Assembly (NCBI GenBank): GCA_977020255.1
Contig: CDROCS010000506.1
Span: 3,596,001-3,660,000 of the forward strand
Length of the DNA: 64,000 nucleotides
Origin: Obrimoposthia wandeli
Lineage: Eukaryota
Direction of reading: 5' to 3'
Under the pieces are notes generated by a model. The model did not search any database, had not been told where the DNA came from, and saw only the letters and a program-made list of their open reading frames with translations. The translations under genes were made by a program, and so were the position numbers. Shown piece after piece: positions 37,998 through 60,692 of this stretch (positions within the stretch are counted from its first letter, which is position 1; every line of letters starts with the position of its first letter).

Positions 37998-39907
37998 ATT
38001 TGCTCCGAACTGTTTTGCTGATTTGATTCAGCGTTACGTTGCTGACTTTCTATATACATTTTGTTTCTTAATAATAACGACGGATCATCAGGGATATTCC
38101 GCAGCCATTTTTGTAAGCGTTGTTGCTGCTCTTTTTCTAATGGCGTTTGTTGTGCTGCTGATAACCCCTGACTACTAGCTTCCTCTGCATTTTCATTACT
38201 TTCAACTTGTTGACCTGCTAAACCCGTTTTATCTTGATCATCTTGTTGGCTCTGACTGTCTTGTTGGCTCTGACTGTCTTGCTGGTCCTGACTGTCTTGC
38301 TGGTTCTGACTGTCTTGCTGGTTCTGACTGTCTTGCTGGTCCTGACGGTCTTGTTGGTCCTGACTGTCTTGCTGGTTCTGACTGTCTTGCTGGTTCTGAC
38401 TGTCTTGCTGGTTCTGACTGTCTTGCTGGTTCTGACTGTCTTGCTGGTCCTGACTGTCTTGCTGGTTCTGACTGTCTTGCTGGTCCTGACTGTCTTGCTG
38501 GTTCTGATTGTCTTGCTGTTTCTTACCGTCCTTACCTTTGTCACCTTGCTGTGGCTTTTGCTGTTTTTTCATTTGCTTGGCGACTTCAAGATTACCTTTG
38601 GCATCGTTATTTTCAGGATCTAATTTTAACGCTTGCTCATAAGCTTTAGTTGCGTCATCAATATTACCCAACTGCATTAAGGCGTTACCTTGATTATATA
38701 AAGCGTCACTGCTGTTATCATCTGCCCACAGATCGATAGCTTGCTGATATTCTCCAGCCTTATACAGAGCGCTAGCTTGCCAGTTTGGGTCCGAAAAAGT
38801 GTCAGCTGATTGTTGGTATTTTTTGTTTTGATACAATGTTGCACCATTTTCGTTACTGTTTTTCCATATCGATGTGTCAGCTGCATAGCTTGGTTCTGGC
38901 TGTAACAAGAATACCAGGAAGAAACTGAAAAATAGCTGCTTACGAAAGCTAAACGCGGCTAATAATGCAATTAAAGGTAATAACCAGATACCATCATCGT
39001 TACGTTGTTCTGTGGTTAGCTCAGTTTTCTGACTATTTTCAAAACGGGAAGGATGATTGAATAAATCATTGAGCGGCTGGCTGCCATGCGTGATCACTTG
39101 CGCTTGTCCTGAATTCGTTTTTGCTGTGTCTTTTAATAAGCGAGCATCAAGTTGTGGTACGACAATGGTGCCTTGATTGTTTTTAAGCAATTGACCATCA
39201 CGGAGTTTAATCGGCGCGCCTTGCGCTGTGCCTAAACCAAGAATTGATAAGCTGTAATCGGTGTCTGCTAATAGCGTATTGATATTGTCTGCTTGAGCTT
39301 TATTTATACCATCGGTCACCAGTAAGATTTGTCCCTGCTGATAACCTGCGTTGGTGAGTAATTCAATTGCTTGACGAATACCTGCGGTTGGTTTGGAACC
39401 TTTTACCGGCATAATTTCTGGTGACAAGTTTGGCAACAAGTTGAGTAGGGTGCTTGTGTCTGTGGTAAGTGGCGATATAACAAATGCATCACCAGCGTAT
39501 GCCACTAAACCTATTTCACCTTCTTTGACCGCACTCAGGAGATCAGTGCTTTTAAAACGTAATTGTGCCAAACGATTAGGTTTTAGATCGGTAGCGCGCA
39601 TAGATAGCGACATGTCTAAAACCATGATTTTAGCTTGTGAGATACTGGCAACAGGGCGTTCGGTATAGCTAAAACTCGGGCCTGATAATGCAATTGTAGT
39701 CAGTACCCAAATACAAGCTAGCGGTATAAATAAGTTATTCGATTTTGTTGCTGGTTGATGTTGGGCTAATAAGAACTTAGCGATTTCAGGCGAAAGCACT
39801 GTATGCCAGCCTTGCGCTTGATCATTCTTACGGAAATACCAAGCAAGTGCGATGAGTGGCAATAGCGCCAATAACCATAATGGTCGTAATAACATAAAAT
39901 CAGTCAT
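37991..39907 (-). CDS. BatB/BatC-type VWA + TPR protein with Gln/Asp-rich linker
   Basis: VLDMSLSM MIDAS, LVAYAGDAF, LVTDG, TPR (ALYNQGNALMQLG), terminal WLRNIPDDPSLLLRNK. Confidence 0.9.
   Translation of the reverse strand: MTDFMLLRPLWLLALLPLIALAWYFRKNDQAQGWHTVLSPEIAKFLLAQHQPATKSNNLFIPLACIWVLTTIALSGPSFSYTERPVASISQAKIMVLDMSLSMRATDLKPNRLAQLRFKSTDLLSAVKEGEIGLVAYAGDAFVISPLTTDTSTLLNLLPNLSPEIMPVKGSKPTAGIRQAIELLTNAGYQQGQILLVTDGINKAQADNINTLLADTDYSLSILGLGTAQGAPIKLRDGQLLKNNQGTIVVPQLDARLLKDTAKTNSGQAQVITHGSQPLNDLFNHPSRFENSQKTELTTEQRNDDGIWLLPLIALLAAFSFRKQLFFSFFLVFLLQPEPSYAADTSIWKNSNENGATLYQNKKYQQSADTFSDPNWQASALYKAGEYQQAIDLWADDNSSDALYNQGNALMQLGNIDDATKAYEQALKLDPENNDAKGNLEVAKQMKKQQKPQQGDKGKDGKKQQDNQNQQDSQDQQDSQNQQDSQDQQDSQNQQDSQNQQDSQNQQDSQNQQDSQDQQDRQDQQDSQNQQDSQNQQDSQDQQDSQSQQDSQSQQDDQDKTGLAGQQVESNENAEEASSQGLSAAQQTPLEKEQQQRLQKWLRNIPDDPSLLLRNKMYIESQQRNAESNQQNSSEQIW
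38231..38518 (-). repeat. In-frame VNTR, 16 x 18 bp, encoding QQDSQ[N/D/S]
   Basis: Plus-strand unit GTTCTGACTGTCTTGCTG with few substitutions; units counted by hand. Confidence 0.95.
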
Positions 39908-51656: not shown

Positions 51657-53654
51657 TTACCAATGCACGCCGCGCATGATAGCTGCAAATGCAACCTGCT
51701 CAGTACTTGCTTGTGTTGGTTCATCTTTATCTTCTAATTTACCCTTCGCAGCGGCTGAATCATTAAACATACGGTAACCCGTGTTCATGATGATTTCGCT
51801 TACTTTAGGGAATAGCGAGTAAAGCACTTCAGACATGATGCCGACTTTAGTTGCGATACGTTTAGGCTTACGGATAATCGCTTGAGCAATTAAATCAGCC
51901 GCTTCTGATGGTGCCAGTGTCGGTACATTGTCATATACTTTTGTTGGACCAATCATTGGCGTACGCACAAGCGGCATATTAATCGTCGTCATGTTGACGT
52001 TACGGTCAGAGAACTCTGATGCAGCACAACGTGTAAATGCATCAAGTGCAGCTTTTGATGCTACATAAGCAGAGAAACGTGGTGCGTTTGTTAATACACC
52101 AATTGAAGAGATGTTGATTACATGCCCTTGTTTTTTCTCTAGCATACTTGGTGAGAAACCCATGATTAAACGGATTGAACCAAAGTAGTTTAACTGCATT
52201 GTTCTTTCGTAATCGTGGAAACGGTCAAACGATAAATCGATTGAACGACGAATTGAACGACCCGCGTTATTGATTAATACATCAACAAAGTTGTGCTCAG
52301 CAAGTACATTTTTCACTAGCTCATCACATGATTCCATATTTGAAATGTCACATGAATAGATGTGTGCTTCGCCGCCAAGTTCTTGGATTTGAGCTTGTGT
52401 TGCTTCGAGTTTCGTTACATCACGTGCTACAAGGATTAGTTTAGCGCCTGTTGGTGCTAATTTTAATGCTGTCGCTTCACCAATACCAGAACTTGCACCT
52501 GTAATAACAATCGTTTTACCAGCGACATTACCTTTCAGCGTCATGTCATTGATTAGATCGTCATTTAGGTTACGTTCCCAATAATCCCATACCGCTGGTG
52601 CGTATGCATCTAAGCGAGGCACTTTGATATTTGAGCCTTCTAATGCACGTGCAGTCTCACGGTCATCAAAGCTTGTTGGGTAGTTAAGGAAGTTTAATAC
52701 ATCTTTTGGAATGCCAAGGTCATTTAATACACCTTCAGTAAGTTGTTTTACTGCTGGTAAATGCGTAATCGCTTGGCGTACTGATGATGGTAAGAAGTTA
52801 GCAATACGCGAATCAATACGGAATGCTGTTTTTGGTGCGTTACCCGCAGTAGCGAAGATATTAAGTACTTCACCAACCTTGAATGGTTTTGGATCAACAA
52901 GGTGGAAGCAGTTACTATGAACGTCTTCTTTATGACTGATGTAATCAATTGCATCTGCAACATAATCAACCGGTACGATATTAAGGCGACGGCCTTCAAC
53001 ACCGATCATAGGCATCCATGTTGGAATTGTTTCACGGATTTTTTTCAATAATTTGAAGAAGTAGTAAGGACCATCAACTTTATCGATTTCACCGGTTTTA
53101 GAATGACCAACAACCATACCTGGGCGGTAGATGCGGAAAGGAATAGAACATTCATCACGTACTACTTTTTCAGAGATATGTTTGGTGCGTAAATATGGGT
53201 TGTCCATATTTTCAGCTTCTTCAAACATGTCTTCGTAAAAAGTACCGTTGAACAAACCTGCAGCTGCAATAGAGCTCACATGGTGGAAACTTTTTGCTTT
53301 AATGTGAACAGATGCTTCAACCGCGTTACGTGTACCAACAACATTGGCTGTTTCTTGTGATTCAGCATCTGCTTTCATATCGTAGATAGCTGCAAGGTGG
53401 TAAACATTATCAATTTGGTCAGTATGTGTCGCTAACCACTGTTCATCAATACCTAAATTAGCTTTAGTGATATCACCTGTAACCATTTTGATACGACTTT
53501 TAACACTCTTATGCACTCGATCCTGTAATGCATTGAATTTGTGTTCTGAGCCTGGGCGAGTTAATACATACACTTGCGCATCTTCTCTTTCTACTAGACG
53601 TTCAATTAAAAAACGACCAATAAATCCTGTACCACCGGTAACTAAGTATTTCAT
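51657..53654 (-). CDS. Bifunctional two-domain SDR fatty acyl-CoA reductase (alcohol-forming type)
   Basis: TGGTGFIG extended SDR plus Acr1-like SDR (TGASSGIG, NNAGRSIRRS, YVASK), ending EQVAFAAIMRGVHW; resembles my recollection of Marinobacter Maqu_2507. Confidence 0.88.
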   Translation of the reverse strand: MKYLVTGGTGFIGRFLIERLVEREDAQVYVLTRPGSEHKFNALQDRVHKSVKSRIKMVTGDITKANLGIDEQWLATHTDQIDNVYHLAAIYDMKADAESQETANVVGTRNAVEASVHIKAKSFHHVSSIAAAGLFNGTFYEDMFEEAENMDNPYLRTKHISEKVVRDECSIPFRIYRPGMVVGHSKTGEIDKVDGPYYFFKLLKKIRETIPTWMPMIGVEGRRLNIVPVDYVADAIDYISHKEDVHSNCFHLVDPKPFKVGEVLNIFATAGNAPKTAFRIDSRIANFLPSSVRQAITHLPAVKQLTEGVLNDLGIPKDVLNFLNYPTSFDDRETARALEGSNIKVPRLDAYAPAVWDYWERNLNDDLINDMTLKGNVAGKTIVITGASSGIGEATALKLAPTGAKLILVARDVTKLEATQAQIQELGGEAHIYSCDISNMESCDELVKNVLAEHNFVDVLINNAGRSIRRSIDLSFDRFHDYERTMQLNYFGSIRLIMGFSPSMLEKKQGHVINISSIGVLTNAPRFSAYVASKAALDAFTRCAASEFSDRNVNMTTINMPLVRTPMIGPTKVYDNVPTLAPSEAADLIAQAIIRKPKRIATKVGIMSEVLYSLFPKVSEIIMNTGYRMFNDSAAAKGKLEDKDEPTQASTEQVAFAAIMRGVHW

Positions 53655-53771
53655 TCCATTATCCTTAACTAAGCTATGTTTGATTTTTGTTAATTAAAAT
53701 GACTGTGTATCACTTTTGTAGTAGTAATATCATCGAATTCAAAATGAATGTCAATGATGTGCCGTTAACGT

Positions 53772-53791
53772 AACTGGTAAAACGACCAGTT
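53772..53791. promoter_or_regulatory. Palindromic operator candidate upstream of the acyl-CoA reductase
   Basis: AACTGGT-AAAACG-ACCAGTT. Confidence 0.55.
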
Positions 53792-54453
53792 TTGTAACAC
53801 CTTGTCAGTGTAATGTGACGAGTTGTTGGTTTAATTTGATTGTTAATCCTGTTAACAAATAATCAACGGCTAGTGTAAATACTTCATTTCAGTAAATCAT
53901 AACGATGTTGATATTTGATAAACTCAAAGTGTACTTATTTACATTTTATTAACAAGTATTGAAGCCCAACGTTCAAAATAATGCTTAATTTGGGTATTTA
54001 ATTCTAAATATCTTTGATCATGGTTTTGGCTGGTGGGATGATTAAGTTTAATTTCGATAGGCAGTGGTTTAATGCATTTACTATCAATCACTTATATTTA
54101 ATTTTATTTGTATAACTGATTTTTAGTGAAGCGATTAACAATAAGTATTAATACTTTAGTGTTAAGTTCTATAAAGTAAAATTATTTCTTGTCGATATTA
54201 TGGATAAATTTGATGTGATTAAAGTCAAAAAAATAAATTTTTCATGACTTATGTAGGAAAGATATTTTAGTGCTTCAACATATGTAATTAAGTGACTAAT
54301 AGTACGTTGTAGGACTTTAATATTAGAATATTTGTTCCATAGTGAATTTGTATCTCTAAAGTATTAAATTCTGAATTTGGCTTTTTTACAATTTATAATT
54401 TTTAAATTCAAATTTTGCCCATGATAGCGGTATCAGAACTCATCTAACGATGC

Positions 54454-54972
54454 TTAATCAGTGCTGATTGGTGATATTACATATTCAAATCCAGCAATAT
54501 ACTCATTTTTTGTAATGGCGATGATACGTTGATTGCTACTGCCTCTAAATTTTAGTGCTGGATCAAATAGCGGCTGTTCAAATTTACCATCTACTAAATA
54601 ATCTATGTATTGCACGACCATTTTTTGTTGTGGTGTTAATTGCTCTATCGTATAACCGCTCCATAACCATATATATTTTCCAACACATTCTTTTTTAACT
54701 CTTTTTACCAGTTTTAATATGGACTCTAGGTTTGCAGGGTAAAGCGGATCGCCGCCGCTTAAGCTTAAGCCTCGACGTCGGATACGGGGATCATTTAAAT
54801 CATTTATTATCTTGTCTTCCATTGCTTGATTAAAGAGTGAACCATTAGATGGAGACCAGGTTGATTGGTTGTAGCAGCCCTTGCATTGATGCTCGCAACC
54901 GCTGAAAAACAAAGTTACGCGTGTACCTGTGCCATTGATCACATCAAGAGGGTAATATTGAGAATAATGCAT
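54454..54972 (-). CDS. nrdG: Anaerobic RNR activating enzyme, second (distal) copy
   Basis: CEHQCKGC radical-SAM motif, LSGGDP, DGKFEQ, RGSSNQ. Confidence 0.93.
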   Translation of the reverse strand: MHYSQYYPLDVINGTGTRVTLFFSGCEHQCKGCYNQSTWSPSNGSLFNQAMEDKIINDLNDPRIRRRGLSLSGGDPLYPANLESILKLVKRVKKECVGKYIWLWSGYTIEQLTPQQKMVVQYIDYLVDGKFEQPLFDPALKFRGSSNQRIIAITKNEYIAGFEYVISPISTD

Positions 54973-55056
54973 AGTTGCTCTTAAACGCTAGCCAATAAGT
55001 CATTGGCTAGCTAGTTAATTAAACTGAGGTCGGACGAGTTACATATTATGAAAATA

Positions 55057-55118
55057 TTATAAATGTTTAACGCGGCGTTTTACTTCTTCTTGTTTACCGT
55101 TGTTACAGAGGCAAGCAT
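55057..55118 (-). pseudogene. nrdD: Remnant of the nrdD 3' end (...NNGKQEEVKRRVKHL*)
   Basis: 55059-55098 is identical to 58150-58189; the next 20 bp match at 13/20. Confidence 0.9.
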
Positions 55119-55254
55119 ACGATTTCAAGCAGAAGTACGGATTTAGCCTATTGAATGCATCGCTAAACTCAAACAGTCTAATAACATTACGTTTTTTATA
55201 AAAATAATCTAAGCTTGATAACATAGAGATATAGTAAACAAGAAGCTTATAACC

Positions 55255-56163
55255 ATGAGAAATAGTGATATTACCAAACTTAGAGAGCTAGATTTTAATT
55301 TACTCAAAACATTGACCGTCTTACTCGAACAGAAGCATATATCTGGAAGCGCTGAGATACTTTTTCTATCCCAACCAGCCGTAAGCAAGCAGCTCACTAA
55401 GCTTCGTAATATGTTTAATGATCCTTTACTTGTAAGATCTGGTAATACTTTACTGCTAACTCCAAAAGCCGAACGAATAAAGCCAAAAGTCCATTCATTA
55501 TGCGAACAAGTTAAACAATTAGTCATTCCTGATGAACTGAATCTTCGTGACGTAAAGGTGACTGTTAGCATCATGTTTTCTGATTACGGTAGTCCACATT
55601 GGATATCTAGATTATTACGTGAACTTCATAAAGAAGCACCTAACGTTACGATAGTGTGTAAAGAGTGGAGTAAAGAAAACATAAATCAACTTATCAAAGG
55701 GGAATTAAATATTGCACTTGGACCTATACCTGGTTCTAACGCTCAATGTGAAACGATTAAGCTAGGAGTTATCACTAGCTCATTTATAGCTAGAAAAAAT
55801 CATCCCTTATTTAGTAATAATATTGATACTGCACCATTCTCAAGCTTTCCACTTATCCGCATATCTGGTTCCACTCAATACCAACATGTTTACAGTACTG
55901 TCCTTCCAGATAACCCTGTCATGCTAGATCAAGCGAGTATGTGGTTAGCACTCGACACTCTTAAATACTCTAATGCTGTATTGGTTGGCCCCACTCCTGT
56001 TATGCGTGATTTAGCTCATGCAGAAGAGTTTCAATATATGCACCTTAAGCAAGTACCGAACATTGATATTTGTATGAGCTGGACGTCTGGCTTAACAAAT
56101 GATCTATTCTATAAGTGGCTTATTGAAACAATGATAAAAATAGGAAGAGACATAATTTCATAA
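55255..56163 (+). CDS. LysR-family regulator (NodD/YidZ/LeuO-like subgroup)
   Basis: LDFNLL...LSQPAVSKQLTKLRNMFNDPLLVRSG helix-turn-helix; 302 aa. Confidence 0.93.
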   Translation: MRNSDITKLRELDFNLLKTLTVLLEQKHISGSAEILFLSQPAVSKQLTKLRNMFNDPLLVRSGNTLLLTPKAERIKPKVHSLCEQVKQLVIPDELNLRDVKVTVSIMFSDYGSPHWISRLLRELHKEAPNVTIVCKEWSKENINQLIKGELNIALGPIPGSNAQCETIKLGVITSSFIARKNHPLFSNNIDTAPFSSFPLIRISGSTQYQHVYSTVLPDNPVMLDQASMWLALDTLKYSNAVLVGPTPVMRDLAHAEEFQYMHLKQVPNIDICMSWTSGLTNDLFYKWLIETMIKIGRDIIS

Positions 56164-56193
56164 CCAATGTTCACGCTCATAACCCTCGGTTAT
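56160..56193. promoter_or_regulatory. LysR T-N11-A box plus an upstream half site
   Basis: ATAACC-CTC-GGTTAT at 56179-56193; second ATAACC at 56160-56165. Confidence 0.55.
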
Positions 56194-56317
56194 ATGCGCC
56201 ATGAAAACTGACCATTTCTAATACCTCCTCACTTTTGGCATTATCTCCCTCGTCCTGAGAAAGCAGTTGAATACATAAACATCGCTGCTTCTCACTCTTT
56301 AGTTGAGGAGCATTGAT

Positions 56318-56833
56318 GTGAAAAAACGACAACACGCTATCCGATTATTTATCAATTTAGCATTAATAATCGGAGCTCTATTACCTCATGCGGTTTCAGC
56401 TGAAGAGTGGACTCAGCAACACATAGATAGTGTTTCATTTGGGGGCTCGTTTGAAGGTAATTCAAAAGACATATATTTTGCGTTTACTCGTTATAAACAA
56501 GATGGGATTGGTATCGGAGCTGAAGTTTCTGTGTATCGATATGACCAAGATATGAGTATTTATGATTATTCGTCAACTTATACCGAAAGAGATTTATCTC
56601 TAACACTTCCTATTGCGGCAACTGAAAAGGTTTATATCACGCCTTCTGTCGGCGTCCGCCAAATAAAAAATGAGTATGAGAGAAAAGGAACAGAAACTGA
56701 AAGTACACAATATGAACCTCTTTATGGCGTTGATTTTACGTACATGCTCGACAATGTCAGTGTCACTGTTGGTGTTGATAAGTCCAAAAATTCAGATTGG
56801 TCAATTGCTTACGGATTAGGAGTTTCATTTTAA
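56318..56833 (+). CDS. Small outer-membrane beta-barrel protein of unknown function
   Basis: GAGGAG RBS and GTG start; signal peptide ending AVSA; alternating strands; C-terminal YGLGVSF. Confidence 0.75.
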   Translation: MKKRQHAIRLFINLALIIGALLPHAVSAEEWTQQHIDSVSFGGSFEGNSKDIYFAFTRYKQDGIGIGAEVSVYRYDQDMSIYDYSSTYTERDLSLTLPIAATEKVYITPSVGVRQIKNEYERKGTETESTQYEPLYGVDFTYMLDNVSVTVGVDKSKNSDWSIAYGLGVSF

Positions 56834-56894
56834 TAACGGTTTATACCGCTAAATATGAATTAAAAGTTATTTTAAATTTAAATATGAGGTTTAT

Positions 56895-57587
56895 ATGAAA
56901 AATGTTTTAAAAATAAGTGCTATCGCCTTGATGGTTTCACTGGCTGCTGGCTGTAGTTCTTCGAATGGTTCTGGTGGGAGTGGTGAAACGACACCTCCAC
57001 AGTTCGATGGTGATCTAGGCTTTGAAAATGTAGATCCTCATTATGGTGTCGGTGCACCTGAAGAGCAGCCTGAACTTGGTTTTGATTTCAGTTATGTTTA
57101 CATTCCAGAGATAGATACTGAAGTACCAGTACCTTCAAACCCAATTGAAAAAGATATTCAAAACCCGAAAAGTAAAATTTCAGCGGAGTTTGAGCGATCG
57201 GATGGTGAAGAAACTCTTTACTCTATACATTTTGATGGGAGACGTGTTGGTGAAATTATCATTAATGATGATGGCATCATTGTTAAATCACACCTGACTG
57301 ACAAAACTATCTCAGCGACAACAGATAATGGTGGTTCTACGTGGCAGGTTGTTGGTGCCAACGGTAATCTGAAAGGTGATCTGAAACGTTTAGATAATGG
57401 TACTTGGTTAATCCGTGAAGAAATAACCCGAGAGGTATTCGTATCAGTGGTCAAAGATGGCGAGAGAATATTCATTCCAGCAAGTGAAGTGAAGGGGGCG
57501 CTTAAAGACAAAATTAGAGTACACCTTCCTCCAAAAATGAACTTACAAAAAGTTCAGACTTTAAAAGCTCGCCCAAAAATGGGTTAA
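56895..57587 (+). CDS. Lipoprotein of unknown function
   Basis: Lipobox LAAG-C, Ser/Gly tether, acidic Pro-rich segment, beta-rich middle, basic C-terminus; GAGG RBS. Confidence 0.8.
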   Translation: MKNVLKISAIALMVSLAAGCSSSNGSGGSGETTPPQFDGDLGFENVDPHYGVGAPEEQPELGFDFSYVYIPEIDTEVPVPSNPIEKDIQNPKSKISAEFERSDGEETLYSIHFDGRRVGEIIINDDGIIVKSHLTDKTISATTDNGGSTWQVVGANGNLKGDLKRLDNGTWLIREEITREVFVSVVKDGERIFIPASEVKGALKDKIRVHLPPKMNLQKVQTLKARPKMG

Positions 57588-57596
57588 ATAATTGAT

Positions 57597-57630
57597 AAAA
57601 GAGAACCTCTGGGATGAAGTTCTCTGATTT
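57597..57630. terminator. Stem-loop between the convergent lipoprotein and nrdG genes
   Basis: AAAAGAGAAC...GTTCTCT. Confidence 0.5.
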
Positions 57631-57671
57631 ATTCTACTCAGTATATTGATGACACGAGCCAATTTTTATAT

Positions 57672-58151
57672 CTATTCAATAGTACTAAGGTTAAGCGAAT
57701 GTATTATTTGATTAGTGCTTCCGCGCCACTTTAAACTTGGGTCTGCAAGATCTTGTTCAAATTTTCCATCTATAACTACATCAATTAGGTCAATTACCTC
57801 ACGTTGTGCATCGCTCAGTTGTTCTAAGGTGTAGCCTGTCCAGCACCAAATGTCCTTTCCTGGCGCTTCCTTGCGTACTCGCTTAACAAGTGCAAGTACA
57901 CTTTTTACGTTAGCGGGGTGAAGAGGATCACCACCAGAGAGTGAAAGCCCCCTTTTGCTAATCCGTTTATCATTCAAATCAGAAATGATTTTATCTTCTA
58001 GCTCTGAGGTGAATAACTGACCAGAGCTAGTATTCCAAGTCGACTGATTGTAGCAGCCCCGGCAATTGTGCTCGCAGCCAGATACAAACAGTGTGCATCG
58101 GGTACCAGGGCCGTTTACAACATCGATGTCGTAATACTGGGAATAGTTCAT
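57672..58151 (-). CDS. nrdG: Anaerobic RNR activating enzyme, copy coupled to nrdD
   Basis: CEHNCRGC, LSGGDPL, GKDIWCWTGY, WRGSTNQ; ATGA overlap with the nrdD stop. Confidence 0.96.
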   Translation of the reverse strand: MNYSQYYDIDVVNGPGTRCTLFVSGCEHNCRGCYNQSTWNTSSGQLFTSELEDKIISDLNDKRISKRGLSLSGGDPLHPANVKSVLALVKRVRKEAPGKDIWCWTGYTLEQLSDAQREVIDLIDVVIDGKFEQDLADPSLKWRGSTNQIIHSLNLSTIE

Positions 58152-60283
58152 AAATGTTTAACGCGGCGTTTTACTTCTTCTTGTTTACCATCGTTAAAGG
58201 GACGCGCATCGGGACTGCCTAGATAACCACATACTCGACGGGTCACTGACACCTTGGCAATATCGTGATTGTCGCATTTAGGGCAAGTGAAACCTTTACT
58301 GGTACAGCTAAACTCACCGGTATAACCACATTCGTAACATTCATCGATGGGTGTGTTGGTGCCGTAGTAAGGCACGCGTGAATAGCTGTAATCCCACACA
58401 TTTTCCAACGCTTCAATGTTGTGCTGCATATTAGGGTATTCGCCATAACAGATAAAACCGCCGTTACTAACTGCAGGGTAGGGCATTTCAAAATCAATTT
58501 TATCGTATGGGTTAACTTGTTTCTCAACATCCAAATGGAAACTGTTGGTGTAATAGCCTTTATCTGTCACGTCTTTGATATCACCAAACGTGATCTTATC
58601 TAACTTAGCAAAACGGCTACACAGATTTTCACTCGGTGTGGCATATAAGCTGTAGGCATAACCGCTTTCTGCAGTCCATTGTTCAGTGCTGGCTTTCATG
58701 TGGCTAAGCATAGCAATGGCTTTTTGTTGTAATACTTCACTATCGTAAGGATGGGTAGCATTACCAAACAGTGCATTAATCGTTTCGTGCAAACCGATGT
58801 AACCTAAAGAAATAGAGGCGCGACCATGCTTGAAAATATCTAATACGTCATCATCAGCATTGAGTCTAACGCCACAAGCACCTTCCATATAAAGGATTGG
58901 GGCAACACGTGCTTTAACGCCTTTAAGACGAGAAATACGGGTTTCTAGAGCACGTTTACATAGAATTAAACGTTCATCTAATAATTGATAGAAGCGTGAT
59001 TCATCGCCTTTTGCTTGAATGGCAATGCGCGGTAAATTAAGACTCACTACACCTAAGTTATTACGGCCTTCATGAATTAGTTCACCTTGCTCTTCATAGG
59101 TGCCTAAGAAACTACGGCAACCCATAGGCGTTTTAAACGAACCCGTTACTTTAACTACTTGCTCATAGTTTAAAATATCTGGGTACATGCGTTTCGTTGA
59201 GCATTCCAGTGCTAGCTGTTTAATATCGTAGCTTGGATCTTCTGGCTTATGGTTTAGGCCATCTTTGATTGCAAACACCAGTTTTGGAAAAACTGCAGTT
59301 TTATGGTTTCTGCCTAAACCTGCAATACGATTTTTAAGAATTGATTGCTGAATTAAACGCGCTTCCCAGTTTGTGCCTAAACCAAAACCGAAAGTCACAA
59401 ACGGCGTTTGGCCATTTGCTGTGTGTAAGGTATTAACTTCATATTCTAATGATTGGAATGCATCGAAACATTCTTTTTCAGTGCGTGAACGGGCAAATTC
59501 CGCTTTATTTGGTATCGACCATTCTTCGGCTAACTGGGTATTTTTATTAAAGCTTGCTGTTACGTAAGGCGCTAAGATTTCGTCAATGCGGTTGATCGTG
59601 GTGCCACCATAAATATGGCTAGCTACTTGCGCAATGATTTGTGCGGTAACGGCGGTTGCTGTGGTGATTGATTTTGGTGTTTCAATTTCAGCATTACCCA
59701 TTTTAAAGCCACGCGTCAGCATGCCATCAAGATCGATCAGCATACAGTTGAACATCGGGAAAAACGGTGCGTAATCAAGATCGTGATAATGAATGTCACC
59801 AGCTTCATGCGCATGAACAATATCGCGCGGTAAGATATGTTGCTTAGCATAATGCTTGGCAACAATACCTGCGAGTAGATCGCGTTGAGTCGGGATCACT
59901 TTACTGTCTTTATTGGCATTTTCATTCAGCAGTGATTCGTTGCTTTGCTCAATAAGGCCTTTGATTTCGTTAGTCAGAATACTTTGTGTTTCACGAGCAA
60001 TATCACGTTGATGACGGTATTCGATATAAGCGCGGGCAATGAGCTTGTTGCTTTCCTGCATCAATACATCTTCAACGGTATTTTGGATCGTGTGGATCTC
60101 AATGGCGTGTTCGCTAGAGACATCTTGTTGAACCAGTATTTGATGTACTTTATTTGCCATATCGACTGCATAATCACGATTTTCTTGTTGCACTGACTTA
60201 GCTGCAGCGTAAATAGCGTCTTGTATGCATTGAATGTTGAACGGCACACGACAACCATCTCGTTTGATGACAAATAGATCCAC
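58148..60283 (-). CDS. nrdD: Class III anaerobic ribonucleoside-triphosphate reductase
   Basis: ATP cone (VIKRDG), MGCRSF, CYEC/CPKC, TRRVCGYL glycyl-radical motif; start moved to GTG 60283 (AAGGAG RBS), 711 aa. Confidence 0.97.
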   Translation of the reverse strand: MDLFVIKRDGCRVPFNIQCIQDAIYAAAKSVQQENRDYAVDMANKVHQILVQQDVSSEHAIEIHTIQNTVEDVLMQESNKLIARAYIEYRHQRDIARETQSILTNEIKGLIEQSNESLLNENANKDSKVIPTQRDLLAGIVAKHYAKQHILPRDIVHAHEAGDIHYHDLDYAPFFPMFNCMLIDLDGMLTRGFKMGNAEIETPKSITTATAVTAQIIAQVASHIYGGTTINRIDEILAPYVTASFNKNTQLAEEWSIPNKAEFARSRTEKECFDAFQSLEYEVNTLHTANGQTPFVTFGFGLGTNWEARLIQQSILKNRIAGLGRNHKTAVFPKLVFAIKDGLNHKPEDPSYDIKQLALECSTKRMYPDILNYEQVVKVTGSFKTPMGCRSFLGTYEEQGELIHEGRNNLGVVSLNLPRIAIQAKGDESRFYQLLDERLILCKRALETRISRLKGVKARVAPILYMEGACGVRLNADDDVLDIFKHGRASISLGYIGLHETINALFGNATHPYDSEVLQQKAIAMLSHMKASTEQWTAESGYAYSLYATPSENLCSRFAKLDKITFGDIKDVTDKGYYTNSFHLDVEKQVNPYDKIDFEMPYPAVSNGGFICYGEYPNMQHNIEALENVWDYSYSRVPYYGTNTPIDECYECGYTGEFSCTSKGFTCPKCDNHDIAKVSVTRRVCGYLGSPDARPFNDGKQEEVKRRVKHL

Positions 60284-60321
60284 AAAATACTCCTTCAGTT
60301 TTAAATTGACATTATCATGCA

Positions 60322-60368
60322 ATACCATATATAGGTGTTGTTTTAAGCAACGGCACAATATGTAGTGT
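60322..60368. promoter_or_regulatory. Tandem NrdR boxes
   Basis: ataCcAtATaTaGgtg (60322-60337) and gcaCaAtATgTaGtgt (60353-60368), 31 bp apart. Confidence 0.85.
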
Positions 60369-60396
60369 ATTAGGCTTGAAGTTTGTTTTTGGTTCA

Positions 60397-60410
60397 TTGA
60401 TTTTGATCAA
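60397..60410. promoter_or_regulatory. FNR box for nrdDG
   Basis: TTGAT-TTTG-ATCAA, perfect consensus. Confidence 0.85.
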
Positions 60411-60601: not shown

Positions 60602-60692
60602 GGAGGGGTGGCAGAGTGGCCGAATGCACTGGTCTTGAAAACCAGCAGGGGTTAATAGCTCCTCGAGAGTTCAAATCTCTCCTCCTCCGCCA
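60602..60692 (+). tRNA. tRNA-Ser (anticodon TGA)
   Basis: GGAGGGG/CTCCTCC acceptor, CTGGT-CTTGAAA-ACCAG anticodon arm, long variable arm, GTTCAAATC, encoded CCA. Confidence 0.97.

Follow-up and report, generated by a model that had tools for sequence, protein, structure and literature searches.

The last 40 bp of nrdD, the gene for the anaerobic (class III) ribonucleotide reductase, were found to be the site of a strain-specific foreign genomic islet, which comprises positions 55099-58149 and one copy of a 40-bp direct repeat (3,091 bp together). The DNA studied was a 64-kb stretch, referred to here as the window, equal to positions 3596001-3660000 of the 3.78-Mb contig C506 (CDROCS010000506.1) from an assembly of 1.35 Gb in 6,912 contigs deposited for the eukaryote Obrimoposthia wandeli (GCA_977020255.1). 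Judged by its NrdD protein, which shares 99% identity with the one from Moritella dasanensis ArB 0140 and 91-97% with those of three other Moritella genomes, C506 is a Moritella chromosome that was assembled together with the eukaryote. Read in the direction of nrdD, which lies on the reverse strand, the islet holds nrdG1, a gene for an NrdD activase fused to the nrdD stop codon as ATGA, then three cargo genes on the opposite strand, and last a decayed 20-nt end of a foreign nrdD.

Occupied and empty alleles of the nrdD end

A repeat search and direct reading of the letters gave an exact (40/40) direct repeat with a start-to-start spacing of 3,091 bp. The proximal copy (58150-58189, reverse strand) contains the last 13 sense codons of nrdD and the first base of its stop codon, so that reading through it gives ...KHL-TGA, and reading through the distal copy (55059-55098, reverse strand) gives ...KHL-TAA, as in the empty sites described below. 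This pair was the sole long dispersed repeat in the window, and a search of the whole 1.35-Gb assembly returned only these two copies plus one copy with 1 mismatch in C5394. The latter is a second Moritella contig (190 kb) of the same assembly, close to M. dasanensis and collinear with the window over at least 10 kb at 83-94% nucleotide identity. Mismatches to the 40-mer numbered 0-4 within Moritella and 2-8 in other genera; the 40-mer of genome G005 was identical to that of the window, and the dasanensis type differed at one base.

Beyond the distal core, the next 20 nt (55099-55118, reverse strand) matched the corresponding bases of the window nrdD (58190-58209) at 13/20 positions and the dasanensis type at 12/21. 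When either 20-mer was slid over the whole window, 13 or more matches were reached at only ~2e-4 of positions, and the stretch was therefore taken as a diverged remnant of a foreign nrdD 3' end, that is, the islet's own arm, and not as a chance resemblance. The remnant would encode YACLCNN, where DARPFN- was present in 80/80 NrdD loci compared. On the other side of the repeat, 9/16 nt matched (chance 0.01-0.02), which was taken as chance. A preliminary description, drawn from the sequence of the window, had reported both the exact recurrence of the nrdD end 3,091 bp away and a further 20 bp aligning at 13/20 with a change from DARPF to YACLC; the repeat search and the sliding comparison upheld the two observations.

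The locus was compared with C5394, 13 Moritellaceae species genomes including M. dasanensis, PE36, two metagenome-assembled genomes (MAGs; DT_65 and ArS5) and G005. Every relative examined had the resident arrangement of nrdD, TAA, a hairpin and nrdG2 with nothing between, which is the empty site that the preliminary description had predicted, and the breakpoints lay exactly at the 40-mer: alignments to the window stopped at 55098 and resumed at 58142-58150 for C5394, M. dasanensis, PE36, MAG DT_65, MAG ArS5 and G005. When the 3,051 bases unique to the islet were searched for at the DNA level, the islet was found in 0/13 of the Moritellaceae species genomes, the only signals being weak cross-matches between nrdG1 and the resident nrdG, with none for the cargo. 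The islet was single-copy in the whole assembly, nrdG1 and the cargo being absent from C5394, whose nrdD site is of the empty form, and from the rest of the assembly.

Words of the islet occurred in runs from 12 studies, and the contigs of four of those runs (Logan contigs) were aligned to positions 53500-59400. In the marine metagenome X1, a single contig of 3,081 nt corresponded to 55099-58179 with 25 differences, and in the food metagenome X3 a contig covering 57854-58379 spanned nrdG1, the core and nrdD with 2 differences; sample X6 contained islet pieces at 95.5-98.7% identity, and the independent runs overall contained the islet at 95.5-99.2% identity. The depth of the empty-site form in X3 was 34 versus ~4-5 for the islet, and in the probable source run X17 it was 4.2 versus 27. 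Contigs broke inside the 40-mer, as is expected where a repeat exceeds the word length of the assembler. Joints skipping ~3.1 kb in the run contigs carried the intergenic letters of empty-site strains such as C5394 and were therefore attributed to co-resident relatives, not to excision products. By this evidence, the islet is a genuine element that is polymorphic in natural populations and has existed long enough for its copies to differ by a few per cent.

The origin of the two activase genes was assessed with a maximum-likelihood tree of 52 NrdG proteins. NrdG2 was placed inside a Moritella clade of 12 (support 100/99); it was 82-87% identical to the Moritella loci tested and 92% identical to genome G007 over the alignment columns of the tree. 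NrdG1 was placed in a separate clade of 8 (support 100/100), whose other members were proteins from SRA/ENA metagenome assemblies (78-98% identity), and the closest named NrdGs (Vibrio, Enterovibrio, Photobacterium) were at most 76% identical to it. By these placements, the tree identifies nrdG2 as the resident vertical copy and nrdG1 as foreign, and nrdG1 would stem from a lineage of which the collections searched contain no sequenced genome. Viral contigs held only a 53%-identical nrdG, which makes a phage an unlikely donor. The preliminary description had proposed such a tree and had associated an old duplication with two copies that both follow the species tree, a pattern not obtained here; it had also put the identity of the two NrdG proteins at about 67% (100/150, counted by hand), and of this the divergence was confirmed and the figure corrected to 65% (100/153).

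Proposed founding of the islet and its probable arrival in this chromosome

The reading that we favour, with a probability of about 0.6, is that of a foreign islet founded by a single crossover and brought into the present strain by recombination in its flanks. In the first step, a circular DNA composed of a foreign nrdD' arm, the 40-mer, nrdG1 and the cargo would have recombined once with the chromosome inside the 40-mer (Campbell-type insertion), the agent, for an islet with no recombinase of its own, being host RecA or a phage single-strand-annealing recombinase. The 40-mer would thereby have been duplicated, the old arm of the element left at the far end, and nrdG2 pushed 3.1 kb downstream. 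In the second step, the finished islet, already resident in a G005-like Moritella, would have been copied into a dasanensis-like chromosome by homologous recombination in the flanking DNA, the two exchanges falling ~470 bp into nrdD and at, or slightly past, the distal 40-mer.

For the founding event, the evidence lies in the composition of the repeat copies. The distal copy is a hybrid of the foreign 20-nt arm, the core, and then the resident TAA, intergenic region and nrdG2, and the proximal copy is its mirror image, with resident nrdD, the core and then the foreign nrdG1; such hybrids are the product expected of a single crossover by a circular molecule. A length of 40 nt exceeds the minimum for RecA-dependent exchange in E. 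coli, and a foreign copy identical over 40 nt is plausible because the 40-mer is highly conserved. A perfect core beside an arm with 35% mismatches cannot stem from neutral decay after one event. The contrast suggests either that the arm was already old at integration or that the core was kept identical by later exchanges.

For the arrival in this strain, the window was scored at informative sites at which M. dasanensis and C5394 agree and G005 differs. Over most of nrdD (2,200 to 470 nt before the 40-mer) the ratio of dasanensis-type to G005-type sites was 65/15, over the last ~465 bp before the 40-mer it was 7/37, and from ~90 nt beyond the distal copy it was 43/2 (Fisher tests between neighbouring segments, p = 1.6e-12 and 1.5e-15). 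The G005-like tract (58190-58654, reverse strand) in an otherwise dasanensis-like nrdD was taken as co-imported and was likely transferred together with the islet. Import by flanking homologous recombination is the simplest reading to which this mosaic tract points. Further downstream (53000-55058), the first half of nrdG2 was dasanensis/C5394-like (92-97%), and its second half and the next ~850 bp were closest to G007 (86-93% versus ~80% for dasanensis).

Several points weigh against this two-step account. No more than three informative sites define where the imported tract ends on the right, in a locus that is mosaic throughout and becomes G007-like downstream. A perfect 40-mer beside an arm with 35% mismatches also resembles the att core of a site-specific system. 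Neither a circular form nor an excision joint was seen in the contigs of the runs, which cannot show rare forms. The account further presupposes that nrdD', nrdG1 and the cargo would have been contiguous outside Moritella.

A second islet of the same build was located at sbcC (C506:3678247-3681052), ~18 kb beyond the end of the window. There, a 2.6-kb insert with genes for an OmpA-like barrel and an SgrR-like regulator is flanked by two copies, 93% identical, of a 122-nt stretch made up of the last 78 nt of sbcC and its terminator; the site is empty in G005. The distal copy is the more G005-like of the two, which again is the pattern of a single crossover. Recurrence of the build in this chromosome raises the possibility of a general recombinase-free route, without being proof of one. 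Taken further, the nrdD islet could belong to a class of recombinase-free, homology-addressed cassettes of Moritella and similar marine bacteria, directed to short 3' ends of housekeeping genes (nrdD, sbcC), which would leave via their flanking repeats and re-enter by single crossover, at nrdD replacing the displaced operon partner. We consider such a class doubtful; if it were real, the pairing of a decayed 20-nt arm with a perfect 40-mer would be the record of repeated cycling.

Alternative origins and known systems

The alternative that survives best, possible though on the unlikely side, is site-specific integration by a recombinase acting in trans, the islet being a recombinase-less satellite with the 40-mer and decayed arm as attP and the 40-mer of nrdD as attB. 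The abrupt change from a perfect 40-bp core to an arm in which 7/20 positions mismatch would suit it, as would the fact that the element holds only ~60 nt of the end of its target gene, like attP regions, and the recurrence of the same build at sbcC. Integrase-free islands that move by host functions are also known, an example being H47, a 13-kb microcin genomic island of E. coli with no integrase of its own, which moves in recA-deficient cells (PMC3191183). Against it stands the absence of an enzyme: the preliminary description had noted no integrase in the segment, and the Pfam search agreed, with no recombinase or transposase domain in the islet, the scored tyrosine recombinases of the contig lying at 1.14, 2.18 and 2.58 Mb, that is, more than ~1 Mb from the islet at 3.65 Mb. 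The ends lack terminal inverted repeats in the repeat search and show no inverted-repeat or arm-site architecture; with no transposase domain (Pfam) and a 40-bp repeat that belongs to the target gene, features of a transposon or insertion sequence (IS) were likewise absent. The sbcC repeats, at 122 nt and only 93% identity, resemble homology and not an att core.

A survey of insertion at nrdD also speaks against a dedicated recombinase. It covered 401 order-level genomes, 229 of them with the nrdD C-terminal motif, and 80 nrdD loci. A second nrdD-end motif was present in 1/229 genomes (G664), which has two complete nrdDG operons, no remnant being found, and none of the 80 loci had a second copy of the nrdD end within 10 kb. 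By this survey, nrdD is not a general integration hotspot. The preliminary description had stated that nrdD was not known as one, in keeping with which no published report of nrdD as an integration site was found in the literature and no remnant in the 229 genomes with the motif.

Homology-facilitated illegitimate recombination of a linear foreign fragment, with one end anchored in nrdD and the other joined illegitimately just before the 40-mer, was judged improbable. This process occurs in naturally transformable bacteria and needs neither a recombinase nor circular DNA, and the 13/20 patch could be the microhomology that guided the illegitimate join. Strand replacement of this kind, however, deletes or replaces resident DNA and leaves no direct duplication of the anchor. 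The matches within the 20 nt are scattered as in diverged homology, with no block of 3-10 nt, and there is no tract foreign to Moritella in nrdD before the repeat, where the tract is that of a G005-like Moritella.

An old tandem duplication or paralogy of nrdDG, in which the relatives would have lost the extra copy and the second nrdD would have decayed, is highly improbable and was rejected on the empty sites and the NrdG tree, in line with the preference of the preliminary description for integration over a simple tandem duplication. A genome can contain two full nrdDG operons, as G664 does, but the site is empty in the 13 Moritellaceae genomes, PE36, the MAGs and C5394, among which the window strain is nested; nrdG1 is not sister to nrdG2, and a perfect 40-bp block cannot outlast complete loss of the nrdD body. 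Finally, an artefact of assembly, a case raised in the preliminary description for the 40-bp repeat, is practically excluded as a chimera of two co-assembled strains: two Moritella strains (C506 and C5394) are indeed present in the assembly and short-read unitigs do break inside the 40-mer, but the islet recurs with the same ends in independent marine and food metagenomes (the 3,081-nt contig of X1 and the X3 contig across nrdG1, core and nrdD), and neither nrdG1 nor the cargo is present in C5394 or elsewhere in the assembly.

Single-crossover founding followed by flanking recombination was compared with described systems. The cis-mobilizable elements (CIMEs) of streptococci are recombinase-less islands flanked by att-like direct repeats (PMC5704250), and with these and H47 the nrdD islet shares a small cargo, direct repeats at both ends, the lack of an own integrase, and empty and occupied sites in one population. 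It differs in that their repeats are att sites of a known or demonstrated RecA-free site-specific system, whereas the nrdD islet is without a known cognate recombinase or sister element, has the coding end of nrdD as its repeat, and carries a whole gene of the target operon. Islands at gene 3' ends (tRNA and tmRNA genes, or SGI1, which inserts at the 3' end of trmE/thdF; PMC2297512) likewise supply the terminal bases, so that the target stays intact and its old end remains as a direct repeat on the far side. These, however, have their own tyrosine integrase and short cores (~18 bp in SGI1), whereas the nrdD islet has no integrase and a 40-bp core, and its downstream partner nrdG has been replaced. 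In Campbell-type insertion (a suicide plasmid, or an IS26-type translocatable unit that inserts RecA-dependently beside a copy already present; compare the megacircle, PMC6350997), the homology is similarly duplicated in direct orientation with hybrid donor/resident copies. The cases known from nature involve IS copies or extended homology, whereas here 40 bp of a housekeeping gene would have served, with no transposase. Flexible genomic islands are exchanged by homologous recombination in conserved flanking genes in marine Alteromonas, Vibrio and others. The nrdD islet resembles these in lying within a recombination tract (the G005-like nrdD end) on a different background; such exchange moves existing islands and leaves the original duplication of the 40-mer unaccounted for.

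Islands at 3' ends, recombinase-less satellites and island exchange via flanks are thus already classic, and what is particular to the nrdD islet is the target site, the replacement of an operon partner, and a pair of alleles, empty and occupied, that are both fully resolved and accompanied by a visible tract of import. No new mechanism is revealed by it. The islet provides a clean natural case of accessory genes entering a chromosome without their own recombinase, with both alleles known to the base and present in the same runs. The recombination tract shows its later spread within the genus, the incoming DNA being distinguishable from the resident by phylogeny. The operon has been rewired, nrdD now being paired with a foreign activase and the native one set aside, and this offers a simple test of whether NrdD/NrdG partners only 65% identical are interchangeable.

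Genes of the locus and the cargo module

The listed open reading frame (ORF) of nrdD (58148-60397, reverse strand) matched the Pfam families NRDD (9e-186), Gly_radical and ATP-cone. Its true start is probably ~38 codons inside the listed ORF, because other genera align only from residue ~39 and an FNR box overlaps the listed start. This FNR-type box, a perfect TTGAT-N4-ATCAA (60397-60410, forward strand), lies upstream of nrdD and was the sole match in the window. In E. coli, nrdDG is activated by FNR. Pfam gave two NrdG-type radical-SAM activases at the locus, both of which passed the cut-off of 199 bits for the class III activase model NCBIfam NF008335/TIGR02491: the incoming nrdG1 (57672-58151, reverse strand; 283 bits), whose start overlaps the nrdD stop (ATGA), and the resident nrdG2 (54454-54972, reverse strand; 258 bits), now 3.1 kb from nrdD. 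The radical-SAM motif CxxxCxxC is kept in both, with C26, C30 and C33 invariant in the alignment. Between nrdD and nrdG2 a resident hairpin (54987-55011, reverse strand) with a folded stem of 10-11 bp was located at the same place as in all Moritella empty sites. Scans for sigma-70 promoters and terminators were no richer than in shuffled sequences and gave no nrdG2 promoter.

The NrdD protein is unchanged by the islet, and nrdG2 is still intact 3.1 kb beyond, past oppositely oriented genes. As the preliminary description had it, nrdD was left whole and the resident nrdG displaced, with nrdG1 now in the translationally coupled position. By analogy with nrdDG of E. coli, FNR would switch on nrdD and the overlapping nrdG1 jointly under anoxia, on one transcript and with coupled translation, and nrdG2 would lose its coupling to nrdD and become redundant.

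Between the two nrdG genes, the preliminary description had recognized a LysR regulator, a beta-barrel and a lipoprotein on the opposite strand, assignments now borne out by Pfam, barrel features and a lipobox, respectively. The LysR-family transcription regulator (55255-56163, forward strand; Pfam HTH_1 and LysR_substrate) shared 75% identity with its counterparts in the module copies of Vibrio and of a Tara Oceans contig. The small outer-membrane beta-barrel protein (56318-56833, forward strand; ORF listed from 56303, with a likely GTG start at 56318) has a signal peptide and a C-terminal ...GVSF, and its nearest clusters were of the OMP_b-brl type (Atlas features). Its gene always adjoins the lipoprotein gene in relatives. 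For the lipoprotein (56895-57587, forward strand; lipobox ...LAAGC), relatives were few and unevenly distributed (Aliivibrio sifiae, 78%; Colwellia psychrerythraea, 74%; several Vibrio, 40-67%), with none in 15 Aliivibrio species genomes although A. sifiae was the nearest named match. Its AlphaFold (AF2) model was poor (predicted local distance difference test, pLDDT, 40.6), and neither the barrel nor the lipoprotein belonged to a Pfam, NCBIfam or PADLOC family.

The trio, with its gene order unchanged, was found on the Tara Oceans contig (75/70/64% protein identity and 68% nucleotide identity over 2.2 kb), in the Vibrionaceae genome G279, and on a replicon of Vibrio sp. THAF190c that measures 1.72 Mb and was deposited as a plasmid. 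The Tara copy came without nrdDG, no nrdD or nrdG lay within 7-9 kb on either side of the trio in G279 and THAF190c, and in the plasmid collection the module occurred only on the THAF190c replicon, without nrdDG. Around the trio in the Vibrionaceae genomes G279 and G340 there were no convincing flanking repeats and hence no evidence of the same islet build there. By comparison of these copies, the cargo is an accessory cell-surface module that exists independently elsewhere and appears joined to nrdG1 and an nrdD remnant only in the islet. Rfam gave no RNA element in the islet, and its base composition (36-45% GC) was not distinct from that of the flanks.

A palindrome-like stretch ~30-55 nt upstream of the LysR start is conserved in copies of the trio. 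Just upstream of the same start, at 55231-55245, 15 nt matched the beginning of the 40-mer region at 14/15 positions in inverted orientation; this match is not conserved upstream of LysR in the Vibrio copies of the module and may be chance or a scar. In G664, the two complete, diverged nrdDG operons lie 36 kb apart on the same strand (C1:3589353 and 3625649), and one of their nrdGs groups with Psychromonas aquimarina and the other with the Moritellaceae genome G011. Elsewhere in the window, a tRNA-Ser gene (anticodon TGA; 60602-60692) lies ~200 bp upstream of nrdD on the opposite strand, away from the islet, and a tandem array at 38241-38523 consists of 15.7 copies of an 18-bp unit with a 93% match, a six-codon period if coding.

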